Of a stretch of DNA of 64,000 nt, positions 2,346-55,700 are shown piece by piece. Origin of the DNA: Utricularia gibba (taxonomy: Eukaryota > Plantae > Magnoliophyta). The translations under genes were made by a program, and so were the position numbers. Location of the stretch: assembly GCA_002189035.1 (NCBI GenBank), contig CM007992.1:2790001-2854000 (forward strand), written 5' to 3'. The stretch's first letter is position 1; every line of letters starts with the position of its first letter. The notes under the pieces were generated by a model, which had not been told where the DNA came from, searched no databases, and saw only the letters and a program-made list of their open reading frames with translations.

Positions 2346-2680
2346 TTTCACTCAAACCAGTGAGTTCTTTTTTTTTTTTTTTTTCCTTTTTGTTTTTCTA
2401 GCAAGAGGGTGCATGGGATCTCCAACGGTGCAGCGTGAAGTTGAATGGTAGGCATGTTGGTGGTGGAGAGGAGAGGCTGCTAACTGACTACTTAAATCTC
2501 TTCTCATGCTAAAAATAGAGCCCAAAAATGGGTACTTTGGAAGATTATAATAGTAGAGCGCAAATTCAAGGTTCTGGGGCGGGTTGGTGAGGGTAGAAGG
2601 ATTTCAGACAAGGGCTTTGCCTAAGCATGAAGGATTTTGCAGAAATCGGACGTTGACCTGAGGGATTTGGAGTAGGCTAG

Positions 2681-5600
2681 ATGGAGGCTCTCCGATGTAA
2701 TATCCAGTTGGCGTTTTTTCTGGGTCTTTTAGATAAATGGCCACTGTCTTCTTTATACATTAGAAAAATGGCCACCGTGTGAATTTTGTTATAAAAATGG
2801 CTATCCTCTCAATTTTTTTTAAAAAAAATTTTACACGATTTGTTATTATTTTATATATAGTATAAATCAATAAATTTTGTTAATAAATATCCTTTAATAT
2901 ACAAACATAAATACATACATCAAAATCATCATTTTTTATTTTATCATTGTATTTATAATAAATATACGATTTTTTAAAAACACAGAATATAGATTAACAA
3001 TAGTTAATTAAATAATTTCATTTTAATTATTATCTTACTAATTTTTTTTTAAAATTAGTTAATTTATAAAAATAGCATTCTCTTTTATTTTAATTTTTTT
3101 ACCCTAAAGCATTCTTTACTTAAATTTACAAACTTTATCTCCAATCATTCTTTTTTTTTTATATTTATGTATTCTTTAACTTCAAGCATAGTTTTCTTAA
3201 TTTTTGTATTCTTCATCTTCAATCATTCTTCTTTCTTTAACTATTTAAGGAGAACTTCCATTATCATTTTGAAAATACAAATCATTTCACAAGACATATT
3301 TTCTTGATTGAGATGGCATTTCAATCTATTATGGCAAAGATATTCTTAGGTGGAAATATCCAAGAATATCACAATGGATATCGGGCATATGATCAACCTC
3401 CAATCGCTATTACGAGCTTCGAAAGTCATATATCATTGGATGAATTGAAGAATCAGTTATCATCATTTTATGGTTTACAAGTTGATCGATATGAAATAGT
3501 AGTTTATGCACAATATTATGATTCAACTTCAAATTTTACAAGATTTATGGGACTTGAATTAGATGTTGATTTGCTATATGTTTTCAATTCGTTACATGCC
3601 GCAATGGGTGTTGATCTATTTGTCGAGGCTACACTAATACTGGAAGAAGAAAACAATCCTAATTTCAATATTAACAATCCTTTACAAGATGTGGAGGAGG
3701 ATCAGTAATACAATATTTATTTTTTAAAATTTTTCTATTATGATTTACATAATTTTTATTAGAATAATTCAAAGTTTCATAATTTATGAAATTATAGATG
3801 AAAATATTGGCCTAACTTTTATCTCAAGTAGGAAGTTACATTTTTTTTAGTTATTTACACTTTTTTTTGAAATAATTAATATATTCATTTACATGTCTCT
3901 TTATCAATATTATTTATAGAATATGATTTAGAAAGAAGAGAAGAAAATGATCCTTTGTTTGATAGTATGGCTCAATATGATACTCACTACGATGAACAAG
4001 GGCAAGAAACCAATGAAAATGAGGAGTTGATTGATGAATTCTCTGAATGATGGGTTCCACGAGGATTTATCGCCAATGAGGGTCGATTAGATAATTGGTC
4101 AGAAGATATACCTCATCCTTACATCTGATGCCTTCATTGTTCATAAAAAACCAACAATTTGGTTCTAAATTGGCATTTCTCAATGCTGTCACTTAGTATT
4201 CAATAAAAGTTGGTCGTGAGTACTCTGTGTACAAAACAAATAAAGAAAAACATCTTGAATTGAGATATTATCAGAAGGCATTTCAAATGTGCAATTGGAG
4301 GATTCGATGTGCTTATCATAAACGCCTTGATTTATGGAAGATAACTGCATTGGAGGAGCCACATACATGTCGACGTCTTGGACCAAACTCACTCTCACAT
4401 AGGAATATTGGAAATGATTATATCGCTGAAATAGCTAGACCACTATTAGAAGAAGATATCACAACTAAGGTGAATGTTATTCAGACAATGATTAAAAGGG
4501 ATACATGATTTACAGTGCTGTATCATCGAGCATGATATGGTATGCGAAAAGCATTTGAACTTGTTTATGGCACATAGGAGTCATCAGTACCTCTACGACT
4601 TGCATTCCTACAAGAAGTTTAGACACAAAATCCCGGAACCATTGTCGTCTACAGACACAAAGAAACCAATGCTTCCAACATTAAAACACTCAAGTACGTA
4701 TTTTGAGCTTTTGGACCATGTATTCATGCTTATCAATGGACTCGACCTATTATCACAGTAGATGGAACACATCTCTACTCAAAGTTCAATCACAAGTTAT
4801 TGATTGACATAATTGTAGATGCTTGTGACCTTCTTCTACCTCTTGCATTTGCAATGGTTGATAGCGAAAATGATGAATCTTGGTTATGGTTTATTTTGTT
4901 GTTCGGTCACTATGTTGTCACAGGCGAGGGACATGTCTTATATCAAATCGGTGTAGTTCAATTCAAAAAACATCGTCTCAAGTGCTGCCTTTCAAACCAG
5001 AATATGGTGGATGTCATCGGCATTGTATACGACATCTACTATCTAATTTTCTCACTCATTTTTGTACCAAGGGACTTAGGGAGAAATACAATCAAGCGGT
5101 ATATGTTACATCAATCGAAAAATTTGAAAAATACATGATTGGAATTCAAAAACTCAATTATGCAGCTTGAGAGTATTTAAACAAATTACCTCAAGAAACA
5201 TGGACACTTGCTTATGATGGAGGTGTTAGGTATTTATTTAATTCTTTTAATATATATTTTTAATTAAATTCACTTAATATATTAATATAATTTTTAAATT
5301 CAATTTCAAGTGTGGTACATTAACAACAAATTATGCTGAAGGATTAAATGGAATATTAAAAGGAGTAAGATATCTTCCTTTGATAGCATTAGTACAAATA
5401 TTATTATAAATTTTAAAGGATATATATATTGTATATACCTAAAAAATATACTATTTAATATATGCAGGTTACGTATACTAGATGTCAACATTATTTTTCT
5501 AAGAGACAAGAGAAGGCAATTAATCTACGACATAAACACATCGAATATGCGGATCAACCAGGGAAACTATACGCACATTGGGACAAGCCCATCCCACATG

Positions 5601-7885
5601 CAAAGATCCAAGTTATAGATGCTGCACAATCAAAGGTTTGAGTTATAACCCATAAAAAGAATGGGAAAAATAAAAGCTACATTGTTATGGTTCAAGATGG
5701 AATATATGAGTGCAGAAAATGGCAAAATTTTGACGTACCATGCTCTCATACACAACAAGTATGTCTATTTTATTCATTTTATTAATTTGTATATCATTAA
5801 TCCTATCATATATTTATATACAGTCATGCAAGCAACTCAATATTGATCCTCGTAATATTATTAATCCAATGATGCATCTTGATCGTCAAATAGCAGCATA
5901 TGAATTTCAAATTCAAGCATTACGGTCTAAAGAAAGATGGGCACCACCATTATTTACCTTGATGCATGATCCAGACCGAAGAAAAGATGTTCGAGTAGGT
6001 CGTCCTGAATCTAGAAGACATCTAATGCCTATGGATTTCCAAGCAAGTGGATCATCACACAATAGAACACGTAGATATTCTACTTTACTTGAAGATATAA
6101 GCTACAAATCACCTCCATCGATACATCGATCTTCTATTGATCTTCCATCCCAACCTCCATATGGAAATAATGAAGTACGTCCACGATCTTCGATGCACAA
6201 TCCACCTATTGGATGGAACTACACAACGAGTGAAATTGGACAATTTTCAAGAAATTCTATACAACAAAGCAGTTTGATCATTCATAATTTTTTAGATAGA
6301 TTTAAACGAAGAAAACATTAAATGTAAAATATTTTATATTGTATTTTATTATTTTAAACAATAAATTTGATAATTATTTATATATTTTGAAATAAATTTA
6401 TTCAAATTAATATTTTAAAAATAATTTATCAAATTTTATAAAAAAAAATACGTATTGAAAAGATGATAAAGCTTTTTAAATATTTAAATATTTTTTGAAT
6501 AACTTAAAATATTTTGAAAGTATTATAATTTATAAATTTTAGACATTATTTATATATCCTAACTAATATTATTATAAGATTATTTTAATAAAAAATATAA
6601 TTTTTTTAAAAAAAATAGAGATGATGGCCAGTTTTATAAAGAATTACATTTTCTCACACACATGTGAGAGGTTGGCCACTTTTCTAATAAACTCCGTTTT
6701 TTTCCCAAGAGGCTAACTTGTTCGTTCCGGTATAACGTGATTGTAATTATCAGAGGTTTGATTGTATAGCCTTTCGAATCGTAGTCACGAAGATGTGTTC
6801 TTGGCATGTCTTCCGGAGGTCTCCGTGTGCGCGCCATGCTTGATGTATTGACTCTCTTTTCTTTTTGCAAACCGTCTACTCCCGAGATTTCCCATAGATT
6901 CATTTTGATTGTTTCAGTTTGTGTGTTTCCTCCAAATAGGATTCTTTTGGCGGTTTTGAAATTGAGGATTGGGGTGATAGTAGTAGGCCTGTTGAGTACT
7001 CATTTTTGTCCAGCGAAGGCGAAGAGAGCGATGGGGAAATCCTTTTACATCCAGTATCTGATATTGATTTGCCTACCACGAAAGAAAGATTGCTTTTTGC
7101 AGATGTCTCGCTAACAGTAACTGCACATCGGCTTGGAACCCTTGGCAGAACATCAAGCAAGAAAAGGTGAGAAACATACGGATTTCATATATTATTTTTC
7201 ATGACTTATAGAAATGCTCAGTTCTATAATGCTTTGCTATGTGCCAACTCGCATTCCATAAATTAATTCGTCACATGTTTATGGAGATTTAAATTAGCTT
7301 CTTATTACAAGATTATGTTTGGCTTTAATGAGATCATTTCTCCTCTTGCAGTACTAGTTATATGAGCTATGTTGGGCTTGCACTGATATCAACAGCAATT
7401 CTTTTAGTTGTGGATCAATGTGCATGGAGAATTGTCCGAATGCCCCTAGCCCCGTTTTATTTGATGCGACCATTTTTAGTAGCTTTAGTTTTGGTGCCTT
7501 GTTTTGGATATATTTTTCTGCCACTATTTCGTGTGCTAAGTCTCAGGTCGGAATGCTCCTCCCATTGCTGATTTGTTCTGGAGTATTTATATTCGAAACA
7601 CTCTCGGTCATCACACAGGTATGCAACTCATGTATTACCATGTTTTGTCATTAACCTCGAGTCCCATCCCAACTTCAACTGATAGGAGACTAAATTCCTC
7701 AGGTATCTTGGTTCAAAGCAACTAGATTTATTCATGGAAAGGGACACAAATTGTTGAGAACGGCTCCTCTTCATCATCACCTACTATTGTCTGGGATTCA
7801 GCAGCGGAAAATCGTTGATGCTGCTTACTTTGTTTCATCTGTGCTCATTGTCTGCGCCTCGTATGTGGGTCTACCTTCCCTTTAA
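2681..7885 (+). pseudogene. MRAY: Phospho-N-acetylmuramoyl-pentapeptide transferase (MraY) homolog, copy 1; disrupted
   Basis: ATG at 2681 ([13 protein letters not shown]) is cut by a MULE at 2721-6695 and resumes at ~6696, collinear with copy 2. An out-of-frame deletion at ~7549 removes the equivalent of ~15311-16489. The last exon [14 protein letters not shown]...APLHHH ends with TAA at 7885. Confidence 0.9.
2721..6695 (+). mobile_element. Mutator-like DNA transposon (MULE/MuDR), full length but decayed
   Basis: Imperfect TIRs: left gggtcttttagataaatggcca, reverse complement of right gagtttattagaaaagtggcca. ~9-bp TSD gtttttt(t)c at 2713-2720 and 6696-6704. Transposase remnants CNWRIRC...EEPHTC, DGTHLYSK...LPLAFAMVDSENDESWLWF and SWIM-like ECRKWQNFDVPCSH, with stops and frameshifts. 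Confidence 0.92.
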
Positions 7886-8002
7886 CAAGGTTGAGGTTCC
7901 AACCGGTCTTCACCAGAAATTGCATGTACAATAAAAGGCAATGTTCATGGATTACAACATCAGCCATGCAAACTCTGTAGGTATCCTCAAATGATAATTT
8001 TG

Positions 8003-10045
8003 TTACTCCATTTGCACATTTAACCTTCTGAGCCACACAGAGTGCAAGATCATGGTAAACATGTCGAATCTACGAGCTGGCCGGTTCAAAATGAAATGTC
8101 TTCTTACAACTCTCAATCCTCTCCTCAGCTTCAGGTACTCGGCCCCTGATATTCCTCCGATCAACTGCTTCAACCTGGGGATGTCTGACACATTTGCTCC
8201 TACCGAAAATGCTTCCCACCTCAAAACATCACCGAATGGGAGCACATAGTGATCAGAGAGTATCACTGGAATGCATTCAGCGTAGATGGCTTCCACAATT
8301 CTGGGGCTGGCTACTTCGTACCCACTTGGGCATAAACAGAACTTGGATCGTAGCATGTAATCATAGTAATCTTCTTCACCGTTAGTAAGATAATTGGTGA
8401 CCTTGAAATCTGGATCCTTGTCTTTCCAGTGCTTGAGAAGGGTCTCACGGATGTGTCCATGGCTTCCTCCGGCGAAGAATGCAAGATAGGGGCGGGCAGA
8501 CGACATAGGAGGAGTGGAGACGAGCTTCTGATTGACCAAGCCATCGTAGAGATAGAGTTCCGGTAAGCTTACATCTTTTCGTGGATTGAAGCCCTCAGAG
8601 GTGTTTGCATTGCAAAGCACACGAATGGAAGTGTTGTATAGAAATTCATTGCCCCTTGATGCAGCAGGTGCCTGAAGAGGAACAGCAGCATGTTATGTGG
8701 AGAGAAGTAGCACATTTCACAACACAGATCAATCCACCCACCCAATCATGACAGGAGAGCATGAAGTGATCAGCTCCTTGCATCATATTCCAGAAGGGAT
8801 ACTTGGTGGAGATGAGCCTGACGTAGTCATGAACAAACTCTTGCAGAGGGGAGACATCGTATGCATGAGATCTGTAGAGGAACCGTACCATCCATGTTAT
8901 GCTGAATGGCATGAAGAATACGTGTGCTGATTTCGGATCGCTGGTTCGAAAGGGATTCATTCCGCTTTCCATCTCGTGTATGAATCTGCCTTCGCTTGAG
9001 TATATGTCCTTGCAAGGGCCATCGTGCACTATGGGAAGCTCCCCCTCTTGGTATACATAAACCTTGAATCTTCTCTCCATCTCCCTGTAGCTCCTGTCTC
9101 ACACAGGTTGCAGGAAGCCTGTGAACCTCCATATTCTATGTTCATTTGCTAAGCGCAGTGTAGGAAAGCAAGAAACGTGTTTCTTCCACATGGTAGGAAT
9201 TATGAATGAAGCCATTGAGCTCTATGAGCCGACTCAAAGGAACACTATCGACATTGATGGTGGATTGTAAAGAAGGAATGGATCAATCATGAGACTAGAG
9301 AACACAATTTTGCTAAAGAATTGTAAAGAACACAGAGTGTGCTAGAAATGGAAGACTAGTTTCATGAAGAGCCTCATGAGTGGTTCCCGAGGTTTCTCTG
9401 GTTTTATGTTAATAAGATCGATAATCCCATCGGAATCTAACAAAAAAATAGTTCGGCGGCAGTGAGCTAGTTGCTTACTTAATAAATGCAGGAGGATTCC
9501 TATAAACTGCTGAAAAGGAAATGCCATGTTCATCCATGATTGCTGATGCTGAGTGGCTGTTCTCTACTGAAACAGCAGCTTTCTTGATCTCTCTTCGAGC
9601 TCGGGCTAGTCCTTGCTCCAGAGCATTCCTCACTTTACCCTCCATCATACCAAAAAAACCGATCAAACGGAATGAGTGTTGTATATGGAAGAGAGGGGGA
9701 AAAAGAAAGAAAGAAAGAAATCAATGATGATGAAGAAACACAAGGAATCATGCAGCCGCACACAGCCATATAAAAGACGCTCAGCAGATGCATTACGATC
9801 TCCTCATTCCGATACGAATAAGAGTGAGCTTCCAGCTCGTGGCCGCCTAGGCGCATGGACGTGATATTGGTATCCCGCCTTGGGGATCGGGATTCAGAGC
9901 ATGGATTCAGGCTGATGAATGTGATGATGCTGGTAGCTTTACAGGACGACAAGTCACCAAGGAGAAAAACGGCGGTCATCAAAGCAGTTAAAACGGATAA
10001 AATCAGTAGCATCGCGGTGGAGAAACAAGTTCTGTTAGCCGCCAT
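8003..10045 (-). CDS. Exostosin-family (GT47) probable glycosyltransferase, At5g25310-like, type II membrane
   Basis: Signal-anchor exon from ATG 10045. Exon with LEQGLARARREIKKAA...VYRNPPAF. Exon 9093-8742 MERRFKVYVYQEGELPIVHDGPCKDIYSSEG...DHFMLSCHDW. Exon 8671-8003 LCNANTSEGF...SKFCLCPSGYEVASPRIVEAIYAECIPVI...HSVWLRRLN. The exon 1/2 junction is not resolved. Confidence 0.92.
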
Positions 10046-11994: not shown

Positions 11995-13580
11995 ATGGTA
12001 AGTTATTCGTTTCATCAATACAAAAACCTCGCTTGTGTAGTTTTGGAGAGAGATCTAGTGTCTGTTTCAAACAGCGCATTGCATCATCCTGTTGTTTCTA
12101 CGATATTGCACAATAGCTCTACTTATTTCCCGGTTATGTTAGCTCCGCCTGGAAAATTGACTAAAACTCATTGCTTGATGATTTTTATGGAAATGAGGGG
12201 TCTGTTTATTTAACTTGCTTTTTGTTGTTTTTAATTTTTTCGTATAATGATTAACAGGCTAGAGGGAATGTTTGCCGTTGATTCTCATTTGCGAAACAGA
12301 CTGAAGTATGCCTTGACCTATAGTGAAGTCATTGCCATCTTGATGCAACGCTGGTTCTTGTTGATAACAAGGTCCGAGCTGACAAGACATATCCTGCAGG
12401 ATTCATGGGTATGCTTTCTTTCCTTTTTATAATAGTTTCTAGTTGACTTCGCATATTTACATGATCTGTTTTGTCTGCGTTATTGGATGAAAGTGATGAA
12501 AGCGAATGAATTATCTGATGGTTTACGCCATGTGCTGGAACCAAACTTTTTTCGCTACGTTCTTTCTGATTCATCCTTGTTCATTGTTGGCTAAAATTGA
12601 GGTTCAAAAATCGATTTGGGTGATACGAAAATCTTTTGGAAGATAAATCGACTGTAACTGGTTAACCACGCACTGGTGCCTGACTGACGAGGACATGATG
12701 CTCGACAAATTGAATCCTTTGTGGGGCTTCCAGAGTTTGCCCATTTGTTTATTCAGCTTTGTGTAATTCATTTAAAATGGCATTGGGCAGTAACGTGAAA
12801 TTCTGGATAACTACATGGTACGCTTTCATCTGTTGCTGTTACATGGTCCCTCGAAAAAAATATATTGCAACAACTGGCAGTGAATGTTCATAGTCACTCG
12901 GGGCTTTGCTAACGTAGTTTTTGCCTGACAATTATTCCCAATTTTTTTTTAAAAAAACTTGGCACCTTCTTTCTATCTTAGATGTTGTCTCTATTCCGAA
13001 TACCAATGAGAATTTTCGTCTTCTGCATGACACAAAGGGCCGTTTAAGCTGCACTCAATCAGGGATGAGGAGACAAAGGTTCGTTTTCGCTTACTTGTTT
13101 TTTCTGAGATATGTCAAGCTCCCGCATTTTGCCTTAGGGAATCCACTCTTCCTTACATTTCCGTTTAGCATCTTTTAAATTATTTATCCTTGCAGTTCAA
13201 GCTATGCAAAGTTCGGTCAGTCCAATTCGGGAAGGGAATCCCATACCTGCGCACTTACATGGGAGAACTATTCTGACCCGCCCATCAAGGCCAATGACAC
13301 CATTAAGCTTGACTTTTGAGGAGAACAAAATTATCGACTTCATCAAGTTCGATGTGGGCAATGCTGTGATGGTTACGGGCGGAAGAAATCGAGGGCGTGT
13401 TGGGGTGATCAGAAACAGAGAGAAGCACAAGGAAACCTTCGAGAAAATCCATGTGGAGGATGCTACTGGTCGTGCATTTGCTACCCGACTGAGCAACGTC
13501 TTCTCTATCGGCAAAGGCATCAAGCTGTCCATCATTGAAGAGTCCAGGAAAAGGCTTGCTGCCCAGTCGGCTGCCGCTTG
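11995..13580 (+). pseudogene. RPS4: 40S ribosomal protein S4 (eS4) pseudogene, copy 1
   Basis: ATG-only first exon (ATG|gtaag). Exon 2 ARG fused by deletion to CLPLIL.RNRLKYALTY...TYPAGFM. Then [55 protein letters not shown] and [13 protein letters not shown], with several frameshifts. Confidence 0.92.
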
Positions 13581-14153
13581 TGTGGCGAGCAGTTGGAGAC
13601 GTCGGTATGCTCCTCTTTTCCTGTACTTGAGAGCATTCCGCTGATGTTTTCCTCACCTTCAAGACAAGCAGCATATAATGACTGATGTCCGTCCCATTCG
13701 ATCGTTCCTTGGGCAACGCAGATGTGCCTTTTATGTGTAGTCAAGTTTAGTGCAAACTCAAGTGCAATTCAAGTTTCCGAAATTGTGGAACAGATTGAAT
13801 CCAAGAATAGATGGCTTCCTGTAGTAAATTAAGAATTGTTTTATATTGAAGCCCAGGTACAACAGCTTATTTGGCAGTTGACTCGAATAAACAAGTGTAA
13901 TTAAGACAGGTGTGGGACAGCTTATCGGAGAACTTTTCTGCAATAGAAGTCAGATGACCATTAGCTTGATCCGACGGCTGTCCGTGCTCCGGATCCCAAC
14001 CTGGCACTTGAATTCAACCAATTCCAGCTACTAAATTTTTGCGTTTGTTTCGAGTACTCCGCCATCACTGCCGTTCATCCTTACCGCAAATCTCTCCCAG
14101 ATTCTCAGGCGGGCAGAGCAGCCCACCGACGTTTCCTTTGCTTGTTGGGTTCT
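12715..14153 (+). repeat. End of tandem-duplication copy 1 (RPS4 3' part plus ANTH upstream region), paralogous to ~31447-32681
   Basis: Collinear similarity by eye, e.g. ctccgccatcactg.cgttc.tcct.acc.caaatct...tctcaggcggg.agagcagcccaccgacgt at ~14058-14131 and ~32586-32660. Confidence 0.9.
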
Positions 14154-14409
14154 GGAATGGCACGCATGTTGGTGGTGGAGAGGATAGGCTGCTAACTGAC
14201 ATGTATGTTAAATTTCTTCATCATTTAGAAATCATGCTAAAAATAGAGTTAAAGAATGAATACTTTGGAAAATTATAACAGCATAGCGCAAATTCAAGAT
14301 TATTGGACGGATTAATGAGGGTAGAATGATTTCAGACAAGGGTTTTACCTAAACATGAAGGATTTGGAAAAAATTCCACAATGGCTTTGAGGGATTTGGA
14401 ATAGGCTAG

Positions 14410-16826
14410 ATGGAAGCTTTGCGATGTAATATCCAATCGGCGTTTTTTTCCAAGAGGCTGCCTTTGCTCAATTTCCAGAAGCCCAACTCGTGTTATTGTT
14501 TAAATCCCAAGGTAAGTGAAACTTCAACTGGTGCGTTCCGGTACAACGTGATTGAAATTATTAGAGATTTGATCGTACAGCCTTTCAAATCGCAGTCACG
14601 AAGATGTGTTCTTGGCATCTCTCGCAGAGGTCTCCATGTGCGTGCCATGCTTGATGTACTGAGTCTCTTTTCTTTTTGCAAACCATCTACTCAGATTTCC
14701 CATAAAGTCATTTTGATTGTTTCAGTTTGTGTATTTCCTCCAAATAGGATTCTTTTGGTGGTTTTGAAATTGAGGATTGGGGTGATAGTAGTAGACCTGT
14801 TGAGTACATTGTTTCGTCCAGCGAAGGCGAAGACAGTGATGGGGAAATCCTTTTACATCCAATATCTGATATTGATTTGCCTACCACGAAAGAAAGATTG
14901 CTTTCTACAGATGACTCACTAACAGTAACTGCACATCGCCTTGGGACCCTTGGTAGAACATCGGGCAAAAAAAGGTGAGAAACATGTGGATTTCATACTC
15001 ATGGCCTATAGAAATGCTTAGTTCTATAATGCTTTGCTATGTGCCATAGATTTAAATTAGCTTCTTATTACAAGATTATGTTTGGCATTAATGAGATCAT
15101 TTTTCCTCTTGCAGTACTAGTTATATGAACTATGTTGGGCTTGCACTGACATCAACAACAATTCTTTTAGTTGTGGATCAATATGCATGGAGAATTGTCC
15201 GAATGCCTCTAGCACCATTTTATTTAATGCGACCATTTTTAGTAGCATTAGTTTTGGTGCCTTGTTTTGGATATATTTTCTTGCCACTATTTCGTATGCT
15301 GAGTCTTGGATCAGCAATACGCAAGGGGGCACCTTTGCATTTTTCTAAAAAGGCAAACCTATCAATGGATAGAATATTTTTCATACCTATTGGTATACTT
15401 GTTGCTGAAGCAGCAGTCAAGTTTTCTTCTAAGGAAGTTTTTGGTATTGCTGCTACAATGATTTTGCTTACTTCTATTGGCGTGCTAGCTAATTATTTTG
15501 GTATAATGGAAAAGATCAACGACCTCCCTACTTGGGCAAGGCATTTTATTGAGGTTGAACTGTGACTTTTGAGACTTAATTATGCTTTCTATTATTTTTT
15601 TCTTGTCATCATTCAGATTTTTAATCTAAAATGAAATTGTTTTCAGGTTGCTGTTGGAGCATGTTTTTCATATTGGATGTACACCACAGACATATCGACA
15701 CCATATAGCATGTAACATCTTTTCTCTTTTGATAGGAGATCCATACCATTTTCTTAATGAAAAATTTAAGTCATTTTGATTGCTTTGAAATTTCTTAATC
15801 TCTGAGACTCCATACAATATTTTTCTGATTTACTTGAACTATCGTTTTATTGAAGTTTTGTTTTTCTTAATGTGTTTGAAGTTTCAATCCATGCCTCTAC
15901 TTGTAAAGTTTTTATTGAACTAGTTTGAAAACAATCTGCTCTTCTTATGAGTGAATTAGCATCATCATTGTTGGTTTTCAGGAAAATGGTAGTTCCTCTA
16001 CCACCACCTTTGGGCCTTATTTGTGCCAGAAAATTTTATCCCATCTTGTGTTCAATGTGTTTTGCTTCCACGGTAAATGGTGTTGAGTTGACTAATGGGC
16101 TTGATGGATTGGCTCTTGGCACCGCTGCTCTTGCATTCATTGGAATGTCAATTGTTGTTGTTCCTATATGCTCGGGCAAGTACATGCTATCATCATTTTT
16201 CTAAGCTTATCAAGATTGTCAGCCATCATTGAATTTTCATCCTGTTAAACTCACACTTGAGTGGAATTAAAGCTGAATCGCTTCTTAAAACAAACTAGAA
16301 AAATAACATTTGTTCTGTTTTCTCATTGATTGTTGAATGATCATTCTCAGAGTTATCTATATTTGGAGCTTCAATGGCTGGGGCATGCATTGGTTATCTT
16401 CTATATAGCCATCACAACACTTGTGAATCCCTTGGCCACACTGGAGCTTTGGCACTTGGTGGAGCTCTTGCTGCAATGGCTTCTTGTACGGGAATGTTCC
16501 TCCCATTGCTGATTTGTTCTGGAGTATTTCTAGTCGAAACACTCTCGGTCATCACACAGGTATGCAACTCATGTATTGCTATGTTTTGCCATTAACCTCG
16601 AATCCCATCTCAACTTCAACTCATAGGAGACTAAATTCCTCAGATATCTTGGTTCAAAGCAACTAGATTTATTCATGGAAAGGGATACAAATTGTTGAGA
16701 ACAGCTCCTCTTCATCATCACCTAGTATTATATGGGATTCAGCAGTGGAAAATTGTTGCTGCTGCTTACTTTGTTTCATCTGTGCTCATCGTCTGCGCCT
16801 CGTATGTGGGTTTATCTTCCCTTTAA
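14410..16826 (+). CDS. MRAY: MraY homolog, copy 2; 8 exons, 497 aa, plastid transit peptide-like N-terminus, divergent catalytic motifs
   Basis: Exons 14410-14511, 14581-14655, 14748-14974, 15115-15553, 15647-15711, 15982-16175, 16351-16559 and 16644-16826 join in phase (1494 nt) without stops. Motifs [67 protein letters not shown] and PLHHH match plant MraY (Arabidopsis TRANS11 type). Confidence 0.9.
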
Positions 16827-16937: not shown

Positions 16938-17957
16938 TTACTCCATTTGTACATTTAACCTTCTGAGCTACACAGAGTGCAAGATCATCGTAAACATGTC
17001 AAATCTACGAGCTGGACGATTCAAAACAAAATGCCTTCTTATAGCTCTCAATCCTCTCGTCAGCTTTTGATATTCTGCCTCTGATATTCCTCCGATCAGC
17101 TGCTTCAACCGAGGATGTCTTACACACTTGCTCCCACCGAAAGTGATCAGAGAGTATCAAAGGAATGCATTCAGCGTACATGGCTTCCACAATTCTGGGC
17201 TGGTTGCTTCGTAGTCACTTGGGCATAAATAGAACTTGGATCATAGCATGTAATCATAGTTAGATAATTAGTGACCTTGAGATCTGGATCCTTGTCTTTC
17301 CAGTGTGTGAGAAGGGTCTCACGGATGTGTCCATGGCTTCCTCCTACAAAGAATGTGAGATAGGGGTGGGCAGATGACATAGGAGGAGGAGTGGAGACGA
17401 GCTTCTGATTGACCGAACCTTTGTAGAGATAGAGTTTGGGTAAACTTACATCTTTTTCATAGATTGAAGCCCTCAGAGGAGTTTGCATTGCAAAGCACAC
17501 GAATGTAGGTGTGGTTTAGAAATTCATTCCCCTTTGATGCAGTAGGTGCTTGAAGAACAACAACATGCCATGTGGAGATAAGTAGCACATCTCACAACAT
17601 AGATCAACCCACCCACCCAATCATGATAGGAGAGCATGAAGTGATCAGCTCCTTGTATCATATTCCAGAAGGGATGCTTGGTGGAGATGAGCCTCACGTA
17701 ATCATGAACAAACTCTTGCAAAGGGGAGACATCGTATGTGTGAGATTTGTATAGGAACCGTACCATCCATGTTACACTGAAACGGCATGAAGAATACGTG
17801 CACTGATTTCGGATCGCTGGTTTAAATGGGATTCATTCCACTTTCCATCTCGTCTATGAATCTGCCTTCGTTGGATTATATGTCCTTGCAAGAACCATCG
17901 TGCACTATGGGGAGCTCCCCTTCTTAGTATATAGAAACCTTGAATCTTCTCTCCATC
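16938..17957 (-). pseudogene. GT47/exostosin pseudogene, 5'-truncated paralog of 8003-10045
   Basis: Collinear with 8003-9080 (MVRFLYKSHTYDVSPLQEFVHDYV, HGHIRETLLTHWKDKDPD) but has frameshifts and internal deletions; similarity stops near 17957. Confidence 0.9.
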
Positions 17958-19461
17958 TAACTTTTAAGATGGTAAAATTGCATTATTTATAAATTGTTCA
18001 TGGTCAAAATTATAATTACTTATAGTTGGTTTGGTTGTGTAAACTACAATAATGTGATATAATCTTAATTGCCTTTAAAGTAAGCGATACTAATTGAAAC
18101 TAACAAATAAATGAAATATTATAATAATTATGTTGAACTGAATGAATATATATTAATTAAAACTCTCTAACTGGTAAAAATTGAGATAAGTTTGAAGCGC
18201 ACTTTTGTCTCAATACTTTTCGATTTTCTCACAACCCATTTGTTTTTTGGATTGTAAATAGATCCCCAACTCTTTTCTAGTTGTGCAATTTAAAATTGTG
18301 AGATTTCCTCAAAACCTTAGGCTCAGCCTGCCTACACGCACTAGAGGCTTTTGGGATCGGATTTGCACTGCCCTCCCTACACGAATAGTCCTTTGTGTTT
18401 CAAAAGCCATTCGAAAACTCAACCTTATCTAACAAATTAAACCATGTGCGACGTGAGGCTCAGCTCATTCTCAAGTTCATCAAGACCAATGGAATATCAT
18501 CCCATAAAAGATATTTGAAATGTATTTCAAATAGCAATATGGAATTCTACACCTTTTCTAAAATACTAAATTTCCAACAGAAATGCAATCTAAGCATTCT
18601 TTTTGTAACTTTCTACTCAACAATCCATCTCATACAATAAGAACAACTAAGTTGCATCTTCCTCATTATCCAAGAGAGACTCTGTGGATTATGAGTTGCG
18701 TCCAATAAATGATGCCAAATATTTCAGAGTTTGCTAATGTTTATTTTGATTTTTTCAACATCAAGCTACTTTGAGTTATTCTTAAGAAATCAATCAATCT
18801 GATAATGATTGATCACTTAAAAAATAGGAAAGCAAGGTGCTAGAGAGAATTTGCACTAGGGTTTAGGGTGCTTTTCAATGTTTCCAAAAGTTGTTTTGCC
18901 TTCTTTGAGGTGCGTTTCAATGTTTCCAAAAGTCCTTAAGTTCATTTTTCCTTGTGATATTTATACTCGTATATACACAAATGTTGAGATAGTAATTTCC
19001 TCCTTTGCTATATTTTTCTAATCATATCTCTAACATGGGAATATGTTCTCATTTTTTATTAAAAGATTGATTTTTGTTGCACAAATCATCAACATAGGCA
19101 AAGGTACCAAGGAAACTATTGACATGTTCATTAAAGCATTGAACATCAATATAGTTTATCATGTTATGTATAAGGTTGGTATTTGAGATATATATGGCAA
19201 TTCAAGGGGTTTGGATATTCATGATATGAATGTAGATATTATATGACAAATTTCATGATGAAATAAAACATGGAAGTTTTCCAAATTCTATTTATAATTT
19301 TATTGTATGCATTTCCTATCTATAAGAAGAACGTTATTCAAATTAGATATTCAATTTCAAATTGTTTTTATCATACTCCAAAAGTTTAACAAAGATGTTT
19401 TTTTATATTATTTGAACAATCATGCTATGAGGTGAACCATTTTTCTTTGACCGGGTGAGGT

Positions 19462-31430: not shown

Positions 31431-31736
31431 ATACAATTTAATCAAAACAAACTATATTTTACAAATTTAATCCTGTGTGGGGCTTTCAGAGCTTTTGCCT
31501 ATTTGTTTATTCAGCTTTGGAAAATTCATTTAAATTGGCATTGGGCAGTAACGCGTAATGGTGGATATCTACATGGTACACTTCCATTTGTTGCTGTTAC
31601 ATGGTCCTTAGAAAAAAATATTCCTACAACTAGTTATGGACGTTAATAGTCACTCGGGCTTTGCTAACGTAGCTTTTGCCTGACAATTATTCTCAATTTA
31701 AAAAAAAAAAAACTTGGCACCTTCTTTCTGTCTTAG

Positions 31737-32252
31737 ATGTTGTCTCTATTCCGAATACCAATGAGAATTTTCGTCTTCTGCATGACACAAAGGGCCGTTT
31801 TACGCTGCACTCAATCAGGGATGTGGATTCAAAGGTTCGTTTTCGCTTACTTGTTTTTTCTGAGATATATCAAGCTCCCGCAATTTGCCTTGGGGAATCC
31901 CCTCTTTCTTACATTTCCATTTAGCATCTTTTAAATTATTTCTCCTTGCAGTTCAAGCTATGCAAAGTTCGGTCAGTCCAATTCGGGAAGAAGGGAATCC
32001 CATACCTGCGCACTTACATGGGAGAACTATCCGCTACCCTGACCCGCCCATCAAGGCCATGACACCATTAAGCTTGACTTGGAGGAGAAAAAAATCGTCA
32101 ACTTCATCAAGTTCGATGTGGGCAATGTTGTTATGGTTACGGGCAGAAGAAATCGAGGGCGTGTTGGGGTGATCAGAAACAGAGGGAAGCACAAGAGAAC
32201 CTTCGAGACGATCCATGTGGAGGATGCTACTGGCCATCCATTTGCTACCCGA
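31737..32252 (+). pseudogene. RPS4: RPS4 pseudogene, copy 2 (exons 3-4 only)
   Basis: DVVSIPNTNENFRLLHDTKGRFTLHSIRD|gt; [19 protein letters not shown], frameshift, then [22 protein letters not shown]...FATR and a deletion. Confidence 0.9.
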
Positions 32253-32944
32253 CCGGGAATAAACTCATGTGCAGGTTTAGTGCAAAGTCAAGTTTCTAAA
32301 ATTGTGGAACAGATTGAATTCATGAATAGATTGCTTATTTTACTAAATTAAGAATTATTTTACATTGAAGCCAGGGACAACTGCTTATTTGGCGGTTGGC
32401 TGGAATAAACAAGTGTAATTAAGACATCTCTGGGACAGCTTACCGGAGAGCTTTTCTGCAATAAAAGTCAAATGACCGGCTGGCGGTAGCGTGATCCGAC
32501 GGCTGTCTTTGCTCCGGATCCCAACCTCGCATTTAAATCCAACCAACTACAACTACTACATTTTTGCGTGTGTTTGGAGGCCTTCTCCGCCATCACTGTC
32601 GTTCTTCCTCACCACAAATCTGTCCAAGAATCTCAGGCGGGGAGAGCAGCCCACCGACGTCTGTTTCTCTTGTTGGGTTCTTGACTGCAGGAACCTCTTC
32701 GTTTTCTGGTGTAAGAAACATTTTCAACTTCTTTACGAGATGCTTCCTTCGAAAAGTTTTTAAAGAATCAAGTTTTGGTGTATTTTCATGTGGTCTGTAG
32801 TTGAATTTGGTGGTTTTTTTCATCGCTACGCGTTAAATGAGCTGGGTGGTCATTGATATGCAAGTAGCTGGTGCATTTTTTGGTGTTAATTGAGTTATCT
32901 GGGGTTTTCAATGTAGGTGTGGGCAGAGAGATCAAGCTCCTGGA

Positions 32945-34829
32945 ATGGCGCTAAACACTTTTCGTAAGGCAATTGGGGTTGTGAAGGATCAGACCAGCAT
33001 TGGTATCGCGAAAGTGGCGGGGAACTTAGCGCCGGAGCTTGAAATCGCTGTGGTTAAGGCTACAAGCCATGATGATGATCCGGCATCTGAGAAGTGCATC
33101 AGGGAAACTCTTCATTTGACGTTTCAATCTCGTGGGTATGTGAGCGCTTGTGTGGCCGCAGTGTCCAAGAGACTGAGGAAAACTCGGGATTGGATTGTGG
33201 CCCTTAAGTGCCTGATGCTGGTTCATCGATTGCTCAATGAGGGGGATGCTGTTTTTCAACAGGAAATCCTGTATGCTACGAGGAGGGAACACGGCTGTTG
33301 AATCTCTCTGATTTTAGGGACGAAGCGCATACAAATTCGTGGGATCATTCCTCATTTGTGAGAATGTATGCGTTTTACTTGGATCAGAGGCTTGAAATGA
33401 TGATTCATGGAAGGAAGCAGGGCGGAAATAGAAATGAAAGTGATAGATCTAGCTATAGATCTCCTCCAGAATCCTACCGAGGCTCTCGTTATGAGTACAG
33501 TGATGACCCGAATCATGGAATTCGCAGGTCAAGATCTTATGGGGATATTGTCCAAGAAAGTAAAGCTGATACTCCACTTAGAGAGATGAAACCAGAAAGG
33601 ATACTGGAAAAGATGGCACATTTGCAGAGACTTATGGACCGATTTTTATCTTGCCGTCCAACAGGTTTGGCAAAGAATGAAAGGATGATTCTCGTGGCAA
33701 TGTACCCTATTGTGAAGGAGAGTTTCCAGTTATATGCCAATGTATGTGAAATCTTGGCAGCCCTTTTGGACAAGTTCTTTGATATGGAGTATCCTGATTG
33801 CGTGAAGACACTCGATGCATATAGCAGTTCCGCAAAGCAGATTGATGAGTTAGTAAGTATTTATAATTGGTGCAAAGAACTTGGTATTGCCAGGTCCTCT
33901 GAGTATCCAGAAGTCCAGAAGATCAGTAGCCAGCTGTTGGATACATTGGAGGAGTTTGTGAGGGATAAAGCTAATGCTGCTAAGAGCCTGGCAAGGAAGC
34001 CGGAGACCCAATCAGCTCCTCGGGAGGAATCTCTGGCCAATATGAATGAGATAAAGGCTTTGCCAGCACCTGAAGCGCACGTTGCACCTCCAACACAGCA
34101 TGTGCCTGAGCCTCCCAAGCCATCCATTCAGGAAACTGGAGATTTGTTGGACTTGAAAGAGGATAATGCTGATGATCAAGATAACAAATTGGCGCTTGCA
34201 TTGTTTGCTGGACCTCTGGATAACAGCCATGGCTTGGCAAAATCTGATGGTGATCCGGAGGTAACTTCAGCTTGGCAAAATCCAGCTGCTGTGGCGGGGA
34301 AAGCTGATTGGGAGCTAGCTCTTGTTGAGTCCGCAAGTGCTCTATCCAAACAGAAAGCTACATTGGGCGGTGGGCTGGATCCATTGTTGCTGAATGGTAT
34401 GTACGACCAGGGAATTATCCATCACCACGTTGGTGCCACACAGTTGGGTGGTGGCAGTGCTAGCAGTGTGGCATTACCAGGTCCTGGAGCAACAAAAACT
34501 CCAGTTCTTGCCCTTCCTGCACCAGATGGATCGACAGTTCAAGCTGTAGGACAAGATCCATTTGCAGCATCTTTGAGCATTCCACCACCATCCTATGTTC
34601 AAATGGCAGATATGGAGAAGAAGCAGCAGTTTCTGGTTCAGGAGCAGATGGTATGGCATCAGTACAGACAAGATGGAATGCAGGGCCAAGCTAGTTTGGC
34701 AAAAATCAGCAATGGCGGCGGGTACTATCCTTCCGGCATACAGCCAATGATTCCACCCTATGGAATGCTGCCCGTGAGCGGTATGGGATTGCCCCTACTG
34801 CTGGATATCAGTATACTACTCTTTACTGA
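32945..34829 (+). CDS. ANTH-domain clathrin assembly protein (PICALM/At2g25430-like), intronless CDS with two 1-bp frameshifts as assembled
   Basis: KAIGVVKDQTSIGIAKVA..ELEIAVVKATSHDDDPA..DWIVALKCLMLVHRLL; LNLSDFRDEAHTNSWDHSSFVRMYAFYLDQRLE; ADWELALVESAS; GGGLDPLLLNGMYDQG; ADMEKKQQFLVQEQ. One G is missing at 33285-33287 and one C at 34792-34795; restoring them gives ...GMGLPPTAGYQYTTLY* at 34829. Confidence 0.88.
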
Positions 34830-44093: not shown

Positions 44094-45232
44094 ATGGCTG
44101 AGCGAGGTGGAGGAGACCGTGGATTTGGCCGTGGGTTCGGCGGGCGCGGACGCGGCGGGGACAGGGGGAGAGGACGTGGGCGTAGACCGCGACGTGAACC
44201 GGAGGAGGAGAAATGGGTTCCTGTCACGAAGCTTGGCCGTTTGGTGAAGGACGGGAAGATCAAATCCCTGGAACAAATCTACCTCCACTCACTCCCAATT
44301 AAGGAATATCAGATCGTGGATGCCCTAGCGCCGTCGATGAAAGATGAGGTCATGAAAATTACTCCCGTTCAGAAGCAGACCCGCGCTGGTCAGAGGACTC
44401 GTTTCAAGGCATTTGTTGTTGTGGGTGATGGAAATGGTCATGTTGGATTGGGAGTCAAGTGCGCCAAGGAGGTGGCCACGGCTATTCGTGGAGCCATTAT
44501 ATTGGCCAAGCTCTCTGTGATCCCTGTGAGACGAGGGTATTGGGGAAATAAAATTGGTAAGCCTCACACTGTTCCTTGCAAGGTTACTGGAAAATGTGGT
44601 TCTGTCACTGTGCGCATGGTACCTGCACCACGGGGTGCTGGAATTGTGGCTGCCCGTGTCCCTAAAAAGGTGCTCCAGTTTGCTGGAATTGAGGATGTTT
44701 TCACCTCCTCCCGTGGATCCACCAAGACTCTTGGGAACTTCGTCAAGGTCGGTTTTTATAGGACATTACTGTTTTATGTTGTATTTTTATTGTTTGATGA
44801 TTCATTTGCCATGCAATTTGAAAGTTATAGCGATCTTTTTTCACGTGGAAGTATGCAACTTTGCCAATGGTATACGGAAATAGAATGTTTCATTTGTCTT
44901 TCCCATTGATGAAGTAGCTGAAATCAATATGCTGTTGAAGCTTACTCAACGGAGACCTTGTTATTTCCTTCTTGTGTGGTTGATACTTCACTACTCGCTT
45001 GCTTTTCGAGGCAATCATGAACATACTTCTCTAAGCACTTCATGGTTTTTCTTATGACTTAATGTATTTCGATCAGGCAACTTTTGACTGCCTCTTGAAG
45101 ACGTACGGCTTCCTCACGCCTGACCTGTGGAAGGAAACAAGGTTCATAAAATCCCCTGTACAGGAGTACACGGATCTTCTTGCAAAACCAACCGGGAAGA
45201 TTATCCATGTTGTTGAGGACCCAGAGGCCTGA
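44094..45232 (+). CDS. RPS2: 40S ribosomal protein S2 (uS5), 2 exons
   Basis: Exon 44094-44747 has an RGG-rich N-terminus and [13 protein letters not shown]...[14 protein letters not shown]...GNFVK|gt. Exon 45077-45232 reads [23 protein letters not shown]...*. Confidence 0.97.
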
Positions 45233-52763: not shown

Positions 52764-55700
52764 TGTAAGAACAATATGGAACGAGGTAAAAGAGCTTTGA
52801 GACTTTGTAAAGATGTTGTGAAAAATATTCAAGATGGTTTAATCGTTATTTGTTGTTTGTATAGTAGTAGGTATTTATAGCAACATAAGATATCCGTTGG
52901 AGATTTAGAAGTATCTGTTAGCTTGCCTTTATCTTATGGATACCAATGATGATAACTCCTTGAGCTAGCTTAATGTGTCGATTGGGCTTGAGCTGCTTGG
53001 GTCGGCATCTTGTATTGAACTCTTTGTGGATATAGATCTTAGATAGAAGTTGGTTAGTAACATACCCATGACAATTAACCCCAAATCTGTCCATTGGGGT
53101 TTTTCGTTCGTTTTGTATGACTGTCGATGTTGGGTTTCTTTAGATACTTCTGTATTCTCCTTTGTTTCTCCAATCATTGCATTACCATCCAACATTTTTC
53201 CTTGAGGTAATGTTTGGAGATGGTAGGTACTCTAACTTGATAGAACCTCCTTTGTTGTAGTCATGTAGTATATGTATTTAACTTTAATATGCTTTGTTTG
53301 ATCAAACAACACTAGATTTTGTGCTATGCTTGTAGTAGATTTGTTGTCTATCTTGAGGATTAGCGGTTTACTTATGTTAATGCGTAAATCTTCACAGATT
53401 TTCAATAATCATTGTGTATGATTTGCTGTTACTGTTGCTGCCATATACTCAGCTTCCGCTGATGATTGCGCTATGGTAGATTGTTTTTTGTTGTTCTAGG
53501 TGAAGGTAGCCGAATCCAAATTGAACAAATAGCCTGTGATGGAGTAGTAGCTATTTTCATTACCTGCGAAATCAGAATCTACAAAACCTTGCAAGGTAGG
53601 TTTAGTACCGCATTTGAAATATAAACCCAAATTGGTTGTGGAATTTAGGTATTTAAGTATTCATTTGACAATATCCCAATGTGCACTGTGTGGTTTGTGC
53701 ATGAATCTAGGTAGGAAGGAAACCACAAAAGTAATGTCCGGTCTGGTTGTCGTGAGGTAGAGGAAAGCATCAATGAGACATTGATATTTTTCGGAACATA
53801 GTTCTTCATCTATCATATTTTTTAGTTTGAGTTTGATATCCGGAGAGTAGGGTACTAACACTTCTTTTGCATTAAGACATCTATATTTTGTGATTAAATC
53901 AATTGTATGTTTTTTCTGATGTATGAAAATATATTCCTCGTCTTGCATGATCTCTAAACCTAGAAAGTATCTCATTAAATTGAGATCAATCAGATCGAAT
54001 TTCTCCTTCAGCAGGTTGTTTTGTTGGTCAATTAGGTCAAGGTTATCTCTAGTCGTAAGAATATCATCTACGTAGACTGACATAATCATTTTGCCTTGAG
54101 GATTTTCTAGGATGTAAAGAGTAGTATCATTTTTGCTTCTAGAGATCTTTGAGCAACAAAGAAGGTGTCTAACATTGAGTACCATTCTTTAGGGGCTTGT
54201 TTGAGGACATAGAGTGTTTTCTTTAGTTTTAGAACTTTGTTGCTTCCATCTTTGATTTGACATCTTGATAAGGGATTGACAGAGCTATTATCATGTAGGT
54301 CTCCATTCAAGAAGGCGCACTTGTTGTCTAGATAGTGGAGCTTCCATTTTTTAGTAGCTACAAGTGCGATTATTAGTTTGATAGTGTCTAGGCGGGATAC
54401 ATGGACAAATGTTTTAAAATAGTCAACACATTCCCTTTGAAGGTATCCTTTGGCTACTAATCTTGATTTCCGTTCCATTAGGATTCATCTTTACTTTGCG
54501 TATCCATTTCAAGTCCAAGACTTTCACATTTTCTGGTCTTTCAACAAATTCCCTGTTGGGTTTCTCGTAGACATCGTATGTCTCAAAAGCAGCGGAATTT
54601 TAAAAATTTTGAGGAAACCCAAACGCAGATCTTGGAATACGGTATACATCAGACGAAGGGAATTTTAAAAATTTTGACTCCGTAGTTCACCAACTGCCAA
54701 TAGCAGACGGCCTCTATGGTATCCACACGCGGAGCACTTCGTCGATAACTTTCTCAAAGCTCTTGAATGCTGGTCGAATTTCTCAGGTGCTAGTAGAGAA
54801 AAACGCCTCCTTATGAATCAATCTCAGAGAGCACGAAGACCTTGGAGCCGATCTCAAGATCTAAATCTTTTTTATATATATTTTGTGACATATCAAATTA
54901 TATCTCCATAAAGATCTTATCTTGTGAAGACATGTATATATTCCAAATCATATCTATATGATATCTTTTATTTTAAGTTTAATCAATATTAATCTCAAAA
55001 TAGCTCTCTATTTAATTTATCCACTTTACCAATTACATCTCATGTAATTATGTCATTCTATTTTATATCGATGAGTGACTCCACTATTGTGTGTGTCCCT
55101 ATAGGCTTCTTCCATTTAGGCCGTAATAATGGATTTATTAATTAACTCTTAATTAATCAAATCCATCATTATCAATCATGAGTGATGTTTAGCAGCATAT
55201 CATGATCCCCAAGATTAAAGAATAATCAGGTGAACTGATTGAGCCTTTCTATGACCAACCACCATGCAATGAACAACTTTCATCATACTTATATCTCATT
55301 CGATACCAAAACATGGGTGTGTGTCTTTCTGATATATTGAACTTATAATTGCATTCAAGCACTAACACTCAATGACCTATTCAAACAATTCGAGTGTCAT
55401 TACCTTGGGCCAAGTACTTAATGTTAGGCTTTGATACAATTACTTGAGATATGATCTCATCGCTAACATGAGTGATGAATCCTTTATTGATCAATCAACT
55501 ATCTCCAACCTTAAGGAGTCACATCCCTACTCATCCATACTAGACAAGCCATGGTTAGACTCCCATTAGTAATGAGCGAAAATGTGAGCTTAAGATCAGG
55601 ATAAATTTGTTGACCTCAAGTCTAAGCTTAGTTGCACGGCTGTTATATTTGAGATTTTGCTACTGACACTTGGTTAGCTTCCCATAGTAGCATCTTGAAG

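Follow-up and report, generated by a model that had tools for sequence, protein, structure and literature searches.

The window analysed here is a stretch of 64,000 nt from Utricularia gibba (contig CM007992.1 of assembly GCA_002189035.1, positions 2,790,001 to 2,854,000, forward strand). Its composition, 24–46% G+C in 2-kb windows, is that of plant nuclear DNA. On the plus strand, at positions 14410–16826 of the window, lies a gene encoding a homolog of MraY (TRANS11 in plants). The spliced model comprises eight exons and 1494 nt, corresponding to 497 codons plus TAA, and contains no internal stop codon. The features of the gene are as follows.

14410..14511, plus strand: exon 1, with the ATG and the N-terminal presequence.
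14581..14655, plus strand: exon 2, 75 nt, the size found in orthologs.
14748..14974, plus strand: exon 3, 227 nt, the size found in orthologs; encodes the acidic N-terminal region specific to plant MraY.
15115..15553, plus strand: exon 4, 439 nt as compared to 448 nt in orthologs; encodes motif 1 and the former DD pair.
15647..15711, plus strand: exon 5, 65 nt, the size found in orthologs.
15982..16175, plus strand: exon 6, 194 nt, the size found in orthologs; contains TNGLDG.
16176..16181, plus strand: donor of intron 6, a non-canonical GC (GCAAGT); GT in all seven orthologous or paralogous loci compared.
16351..16559, plus strand: exon 7, 209 nt; contains LGHTG.
16644..16826, plus strand: exon 8, 183 nt including the TAA; contains the retained HHH.

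Every acceptor is AG and six donors are GT. The remaining donor, that of intron 6, is GC (CGG/GCAAGT) and is needed, as the frame closes only with 16175 as the last nucleotide of exon 6. The alternative GT at 16180, 4 nt downstream, was rejected because its use breaks the frame. The AAGT context of GCAAGT is the usual strong setting of functional GC donors. By comparison with the Lamiales loci, all seven of which carry GT, the GC donor is derived from GT.

Coding sequences were rebuilt from these seven loci, which comprise six orthologs (Paulownia, Sesamum, Rehmannia, Striga, Forsythia and Erythranthe) and a paralog from Andrographis. Exons 2 to 8 measure 75/227/439/65/194/209/183 nt in the window and 75/227/448/65/194/209/183 nt in the orthologs. 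The correspondence is complete after exon 1 for Paulownia, Striga and Erythranthe, and holds from exon 3 on for Sesamum and Forsythia. The intron positions are therefore conserved. The sole length change after exon 1 is in exon 4, which is shorter by three codons, in frame. The presequence looks like a plastid transit peptide, as it is rich in Ser, Arg and Lys and has a single acidic residue within its first 58 residues. The hydropathy profile correlates with that of the Paulownia protein at 0.947, inside the range of true orthologs. Thus, the eight-exon, 497-residue frame with matching splice phases and preserved transmembrane hydrophobicity that the original prediction had described was borne out by splicing and by the hydropathy comparison, with the caveat that the intron-6 donor is GC.

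Searches with single exons placed the protein in the MraY family despite its divergence. Exons 6 and 7 matched Pfam PF00953 (Glycos_transf_4) weakly, at 21.8 and 15.2 bits, below the cut-off of 27. Against MraY structures in the Protein Data Bank (PDB), exon 7 gave an E value of 2e-7, with its GH opposite the GD of E. coli MraY, and exon 6 aligned TNGLDG opposite TDGLDG. Exon 4 alone matched 47 proteins at E ≤ 1e-10 in a representative library, the best being Handroanthus MraY at 52% identity; it is too diverged to match either Pfam or the PDB. Exon 3 is 65% identical to its Sesamum counterpart. A profile built from three Lamiales orthologs and the window's exon pieces, and thus including the window sequence itself, matched five MraY structures at E values of 1e-39 to 1e-45 and aligned all five cytoplasmic motifs. 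Similarity to MraY and the PNPT family therefore extends over the membrane domain. Intron positions, the plant N-terminal region and tree placement all assign the gene to the plant plastid MraY (TRANS11) orthogroup. In the tree, the window MraY fell inside the core Lamiales, with Rehmannia and Striga (SH-aLRT 93), on an end branch of 0.88 as compared to a median of 0.23. By its sequence, the gene is a nuclear gene for a plastid-envelope MraY homolog of the TRANS11 type, with the PNPT fold and approximately ten predicted membrane helices, from a fast-evolving lineage of the core Lamiales.

The catalytic motifs, assigned from alignments to the Lamiales orthologs and to solved bacterial MraY structures, are extensively altered.

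15347..15373, plus strand: motif 1, KKANLSMDR in place of the ortholog KKGTPTMGG; the Lys is retained, and TPT and GG are replaced.
15476..15493, plus strand: motif 2, IGVLAN in place of the ortholog IGLLDD; both Asp are lost (Aquifex D117/D118, E. coli D115/D116).
16091..16108, plus strand: motif 3, TNGLDG in place of TDGLDG; the first Asp is Asn (B. subtilis D174) and the second Asp is retained.
16431..16445, plus strand: motif 4, LGHTG in place of the ortholog MGDTG; the Mg-site Asp is His (Aquifex D265, E. coli D267).
16713..16721, plus strand: motif 5, HHH, retained according to the alignment to orthologs.

The DD pair is represented by AN at residues 260–261, and the Mg-binding Asp of MGD(T/V)G by His at residue 397, which aligns directly to E. 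coli MraY. The K..TPTMGG loop reads NLSMDR in place of TPTMGG. In the N..N.TDGLDG motif, residue 341 is Asn, as it is in the Striga and Gesneriaceae orthologs, and the second Asp, Gly, Leu and Ala are retained. The MraY-specific P.HHH.E motif is present as APLHHHLV at residues 458–465, with Glu replaced by Val. A sequencing or assembly artefact was rejected as improbable, the motif changes being many separate base changes in otherwise well-aligned exons.

In bacterial MraY, the residue proposed to take the proton from the lipid phosphate is Aquifex D117 (B. subtilis D98, E. coli D115), and Aquifex D265 (E. coli D267) is located at the Mg ion (PMC5039524). The residues D98, D99, K116, N171, D174, D231, H289 and H290 of B. 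subtilis MraY are catalytically important (PMC5039524). Four of these eight positions are replaced in the window protein; the equivalent of N171 also differs, yet is variable in plants. All of the motif changes described in the original prediction (PTMGG to LSMDR, DD to AN, TDGLDG to TNGLDG, and GD to GH) and the retention of HHH are upheld by these alignments. The start positions it gave for three of the motifs are exact, and its statement that the DD and GD aspartates are needed for catalysis agrees with the published residue roles.

The altered positions are strongly conserved in other plants. Among 112 angiosperm homologs, the first residue of the DD pair is Asp in 103 and the second in 111, the remaining one being an alignment gap. 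The first Asp of TDGLDG is Asp in 107 and the Mg-site Asp in 104; the first and second Gly of PTMGG are kept by 111 and 110 homologs, respectively. Substitutions at the second Asp of DD and at the first Gly of PTMGG occur in the window protein only, among the homologs compared. Overall, six of 11 key positions are replaced, the highest number in any sequence examined.

Despite these losses, the reading frame bears the mark of purifying selection. Codon alignments of 424 columns were analysed using the NG86 and maximum-likelihood (ML) estimators of non-synonymous (dN) and synonymous (dS) divergence. Pairs of the window gene with an ortholog yielded dN of 0.24–0.31, dS of 0.92–1.35 and dN/dS of 0.19–0.27 by NG86, and dN/dS of 0.12–0.19 by ML. 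Pairs of orthologs yielded dN/dS of 0.15–0.25 (NG86) and 0.16–0.27 (ML). For the window branch, ML gave dN of 0.20, dS of 1.1 and dN/dS of 0.18, and NG86 a dN/dS of approximately 0.26; as dS is near saturation, these branch ratios are approximate. Together with the absence of exon indels, these values indicate that the remaining protein has been under purifying selection. The internal stops, frameshifts and neutral dN/dS of a pseudogene were not found in the spliced frame, and the GC donor is the sole candidate lesion.

The window branch of MraY is long at silent sites too. The same is true of an ANTH-domain clathrin assembly gene elsewhere in the window, for which comparison with Sesamum gave a dS of 1.65 and a dN/dS of 0.08, and whose end branch is five times the median. 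The length of the MraY branch is therefore probably a lineage-rate effect, reflecting a fast-evolving lineage and not a decaying gene.

The amino acid changes are not evenly spread. We considered the positions that are identical across the six Lamiales orthologs. The window protein has changed at 22 of 48 such positions in the motifs and at 41 of 193 elsewhere (46% versus 21%; odds ratio 3.1, P=0.0009). By motif, the changes number 8/11 in motif 1, 4/6 in motif 2, 1/9 in motif 3, 8/15 in motif 4 and 1/7 in motif 5. At the same motif positions, each of five orthologs showed zero to two changes of approximately 49, fewer than in the rest of its protein. When scaled by silent change, the invariant positions outside the motifs have changed at approximately the same rate in the window as in the orthologs. 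These data demonstrate that constraint has been lifted from three active-site loops, those of motifs 1, 2 and 4, and nowhere else.

Further evidence comes from the immediate neighbourhood, in which a block containing MraY and a glycosyltransferase gene of family GT47 (exostosin) has been duplicated.

2443..7882, plus strand: dead tandem MraY copy, approximately 86.5% identical in DNA, with a stop in exon 2, an insertion of approximately 4 kb and a deletion of the core.
8006..9098, minus strand: better-preserved GT47 copy adjoining the dead MraY, with open reading frames (ORFs) of 229 and 150 aa and a match to Pfam PF03016.
12705..14159, plus strand: duplicate upstream of the MraY start, 84–90% identical to 31461–32687, which lies upstream of the ANTH gene.
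16971..17963, minus strand: GT47 pseudogene adjoining the intact MraY, split over three frames, with gaps of 40 bp and 19 bp relative to the upstream copy.

The upstream MraY copy is dead. Its segment 2443–2719 matches the promoter and exon 1 of the intact gene, and segments 6715–7543 and 7550–9082 match the rest and the downstream flank. Approximately 4 kb is inserted after exon 1 (window 2719–6715), and the deleted segment is that matching 15306–16491, the catalytic core. The insertion holds a 193-aa ORF (5740–6321) that has no Pfam match; the insertion may be a transposon. The two blocks have thus undergone reciprocal loss, MraY being dead in one and GT47 in the other, as would be expected if one working copy of each gene were needed.

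Between the two MraY copies, no indel was found in the 746 bp of shared exon, as compared to 12 events in approximately 1500 bp of introns and GT47. At the latter rate, approximately six exon indels would be expected; at the rate of the GT47 coding part alone, the chance of observing none is approximately 0.01. The original prediction had held that the gene escaped the lesions of the neighbouring duplicates, and the comparison with the broken tandem copy and the adjacent GT47 bears this out. Likewise, a dN/dS near 1, named beforehand as an outcome that would speak against the prediction, was not observed. Its alternative of a lineage-wide relaxation does not hold in the sense of plain decay: relaxation is restricted to motifs 1, 2 and 4 and does not extend to the whole gene.

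The interpretation that best accommodates these data is that the gene encodes a catalytically disarmed MraY maintained by selection, in other words a pseudoenzyme that would serve the plastid envelope as a structural component or partner. We assign this reading a probability of roughly 0.58. The candidate pseudoenzyme status put forward in the original prediction is thereby supported, through the loss of catalytic residues, the low dN/dS, the clustering of changes in motifs and the indel-free frame. With both the general base and the metal ligand lost, the protein would not transfer phospho-MurNAc-pentapeptide to polyprenyl phosphate, and hence would make no lipid I. The frame is still under selection, and the residues outside the motifs are constrained as tightly as in the orthologs, which suggests that the protein is retained because of some non-catalytic function. 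Within the plastid envelope, it would most likely act as a scaffold or membrane partner for proteins such as those of division or of the MurG type. Its pattern of membrane helices is retained, as are the HHH loop, the motif-1 Lys and the LDG of motif 3, and the protein may still bind a nucleotide-sugar or polyprenyl phosphate. As motifs 1, 2 and 4 together have changed at approximately 62% of their invariant positions, catalysis was presumably lost long ago, on the order of half of the lineage's branch and well before the tandem duplication, whose copies are approximately 8% diverged.

Several points weigh against this interpretation, in addition to the near-saturation of dS. The two MraY copies differ by 7.5% in exons, 7.8% in introns and 9.8% in the downstream flank; with exon and intron divergence so similar, these values by themselves give no clear sign of constraint after the duplication. 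When changes since the duplication were polarised using the orthologs, the intact copy had approximately eight non-synonymous and eight synonymous changes, and the dead copy approximately 15 and 12. These counts are small, the two copies are not clearly different, and the dead copy is also below the neutral non-synonymous expectation. The maintained protein is itself predicted from sequence, and its frame depends on a GC donor derived from GT. The scaffold role is proposed by analogy with the bacterial MraY–MurG interaction cited in PMC9954125, and from the idea that MraY and MurG may have taken on new roles in plants (PMC9954125, PMC12681378). Finally, the window MraY lies outside the ancestral OTCase–La–MraY position, among duplicated, partly broken genes.

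This last point bears on the possibility that the gene is a redundant paralog: a canonical MraY would be kept at the ancestral locus, and the moved, tandemly duplicated copy would have lost catalysis and be either drifting or serving as a regulator or partner. In Paulownia, Sesamum, Rehmannia and Striga, examined with 10-kb flanks, the gene order is OTCase, a La/RRM protein and MraY; in Erythranthe, the La gene was seen beside MraY within a 3-kb flank. The gene models of Perilla, Escallonia and Striga asiatica even fuse La/RRM with MraY. By contrast, no similarity to OTCase, La or S11 was found anywhere in the 64-kb window, and tblastx of the ortholog loci against the window returned matches only to the MraY exons and to copia sequence, weak matches inflated by linked statistics being ignored. 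Such a pair exists in Andrographis, in which a normal MraY is accompanied by a divergent, non-syntenic one whose GD Asp is replaced and which has internal deletions, and the window region is a patchwork of duplicates. However, the dS of the window MraY to other Lamiales (0.9–1.3 by NG86) does not exceed that of the ANTH neighbour (1.65), and thus gives no sign of old paralogy. A dN/dS of 0.18–0.26 means that drift was restrained by selection over most of the gene's history. Ortholog and profile searches of protein databases revealed no second MraY copy or close relative, the source genome being seemingly unannotated there; a short library protein with the string VLAN matched by chance, through a read-through tail. 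Moreover, in a lineage that evolves fast and is rearranged, little can be concluded from the loss of synteny. We consider a redundant paralog unlikely, although it retains an appreciable share of the probability. Even in this case, the protein would still be catalytically dead and under constraint.

The gene might instead have died recently, the active-site changes and the change from GT to GC being its first lesions and the frame remaining open for lack of time. The GC donor, the frameshifts in neighbouring genes and the equal divergence of exons and introns between the two copies would fit such a history. So would exon 7, whose dN/dS is approximately three times the ortholog value (0.19–0.29 versus 0.07–0.10), and the departure from the consensus at 14 of the 74 positions with at least 97% conservation in angiosperms, a count that no other well-predicted homolog reaches. 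However, 13 substitutions at such positions correspond to approximately 8% neutral change. In simulations of neutral change, the frame was still open in 12% of cases at 4% divergence and in 2% at 8%; a wholly neutral history of that length is therefore unlikely. Several frameshifts would be expected at the local indel rate, yet the frame has none. Only three motifs show excess change, the other invariant positions changing at the ortholog rate per synonymous change. As for the donor, GCAAGT is a strong GC-donor context and the nearby GT is in a poor one. Recent death is accordingly improbable.

An altered chemistry, in which His and Asn at former Asp sites bind another metal or the enzyme uses another substrate, would be in keeping with the strong selection on the rest of the protein, with a nucleotide-sugar pocket that the retained HHH, LDG and motif-1 Lys suggest has survived, and with the same Mg-site Asp-to-His change in Wolffia and Euphorbia peplus, but is highly improbable, as each Asp is individually needed in bacterial MraY (PMC5039524), four are gone here together with the TPTMGG loop, and Asp-to-His is one of seven single-step changes from GAY, so that three among approximately 13 replacements represent no excess.

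A selection-maintained pseudoenzyme would bear on an open question, namely the presence of peptidoglycan in angiosperm plastids and the reason why all angiosperms keep MraY, MurG, MurE and DDL (PMC9954125, PMC10784329, PMC12681378). It has been noted that MraY mutants are still needed and that the genes may be repurposed (PMC9954125, PMC10784329, PMC12681378), MraY and MurG in particular (PMC9954125, PMC12681378). We tentatively raise the further idea, doubtful as it stands, that angiosperm MraY has an essential function that does not involve lipid I synthesis, the window lineage being a natural separation-of-function case in which normal purifying selection would have continued long after the active site was lost. 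If true, this would explain the persistence of the ‘4-PGN set’ in angiosperms that lack the full peptidoglycan pathway, and would suggest that MraY acts structurally or as a partner, either in the plastid envelope or in division. If the gene is the sole MraY in its genome, retention of MraY can be uncoupled from lipid I synthesis, and the gene would provide a ready-made catalytically dead allele for complementation tests.

Other features of the window are as follows.

32945..34794, plus strand: the ANTH-domain clathrin assembly gene, whose Sesamum counterpart is intronless.
44094..44906, plus strand: an uninterrupted 271-aa ORF with both domains of ribosomal protein S5 (uS5); it is intronless and could be a retrocopy, and no record matched it exactly.
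approximately 53280..57711, minus strand: remains of a Ty1/copia-type retrotransposon, with RVT_2, integrase core and gag pre-integrase domains.

The ANTH gene has one 1-nt deletion in a G run at approximately 33286, which shifts the frame after codon 114; the deletion may have arisen very recently or else be an assembly error in the homopolymer, as the gene is otherwise strongly constrained. No database match to its protein is closer than 71%. Decay was rejected as the cause of its long branch, given the dN/dS of 0.08. In the tree, the protein grouped weakly with Genlisea; this placement, like that of MraY with Rehmannia and Striga, involves long branches. Through the duplicate at 12705–14159 and 31461–32687, the MraY and ANTH genes may share promoter-proximal sequence. 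At the Rehmannia glutinosa ANTH locus (L009:10001-11918), the intronless Sesamum protein is matched in three frames; the deposited model therefore bridges frame changes, which may be lesions or assembly errors.

Altered active sites were also found in MraY homologs of other angiosperms.

Wolffia australiana, ‘translocase 11’ (P0027): ED, GH and HQI.
Urochloa (P0034): GD to SR and HHH to HYY.
Striga hermonthica (P0073/P0096): TN and GE.
Gesneriaceae: TN.
Euphorbia peplus (P0186): HD and GH.
Ancistrocladus (P0177): motif-1 Lys to Met and Mg-site Asp to Ser.
Andrographis paralog: Mg-site Asp to Ala.

The Mg-site change from Asp to His arose independently in the Wolffia and Euphorbia peplus homologs. 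The substitutions in Wolffia, Urochloa, Striga, Euphorbia and the Andrographis paralog are milder than those in the window protein, and these comparisons suggest that angiosperm MraY may have lost active-site residues repeatedly. Most angiosperm homologs keep the catalytic residues, an argument for continued enzymatic function in the majority of lineages. No description of the loss of catalytic residues in plant MraY was found in the literature searched, which is not proof that none exists. Like the window protein, the Wolffia and Urochloa homologs are full-length with several catalytic positions replaced. Unlike it, these monocot proteins have both Gly of motif 1 and the second DD aspartate intact.

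The second MraY of Andrographis paniculata (P0004, XP_051143008; L005:10001-12589) is a parallel case, a degenerate paralog annotated as a normal gene. It adjoins an IQ/DUF4005 gene, not La. It resembles the window MraY in belonging to the Lamiales, in its long branch (0.77), in its non-syntenic locus and in the replacement of the Mg-site Asp. It differs in keeping DD, a TPTMGG-like loop and TDGLDG, in having internal deletions and in lacking the HHH loop, and it coexists with a normal copy (P0074).

The best-known plant relative is TRANS11 of Arabidopsis (At4g18270), a member of the ‘4-PGN set’ of MurE, MraY, MurG and DDL, which belongs to the same family and clade as the window gene. Orthologs of this type share with it the exon–intron structure from exon 2 on, the acidic N-terminal region and the transit-peptide-like presequence. 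By contrast, the typical ortholog has Asp (103–111 of 112) at the four Asp positions changed in the window and GG (110–111 of 112) in motif 1. Bacterial MraY (PDB 4J72, 5JNQ and 8G01) belongs by sequence to the same fold family and has the five cytoplasmic-loop motifs in the same order, sharing with the window protein the HHH and the second Asp of motif 3. Four residues needed for catalysis (PMC5039524), Aquifex D117, D118 and D265 together with B. subtilis D174, have no counterpart in the window protein. It also has an additional N-terminal extension of approximately 135 aa and is encoded by a nuclear gene with spliceosomal introns.

Finally, plant MurE provides a precedent for a protein of the plastid peptidoglycan pathway that is kept in angiosperms for a non-wall role (PMC12681378). 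MurE keeps many of its important catalytic residues in most streptophytes (PMC12681378), whereas the window MraY has lost its own. As judged from the residues themselves, the window MraY is more direct evidence of a non-catalytic role than is MurE.

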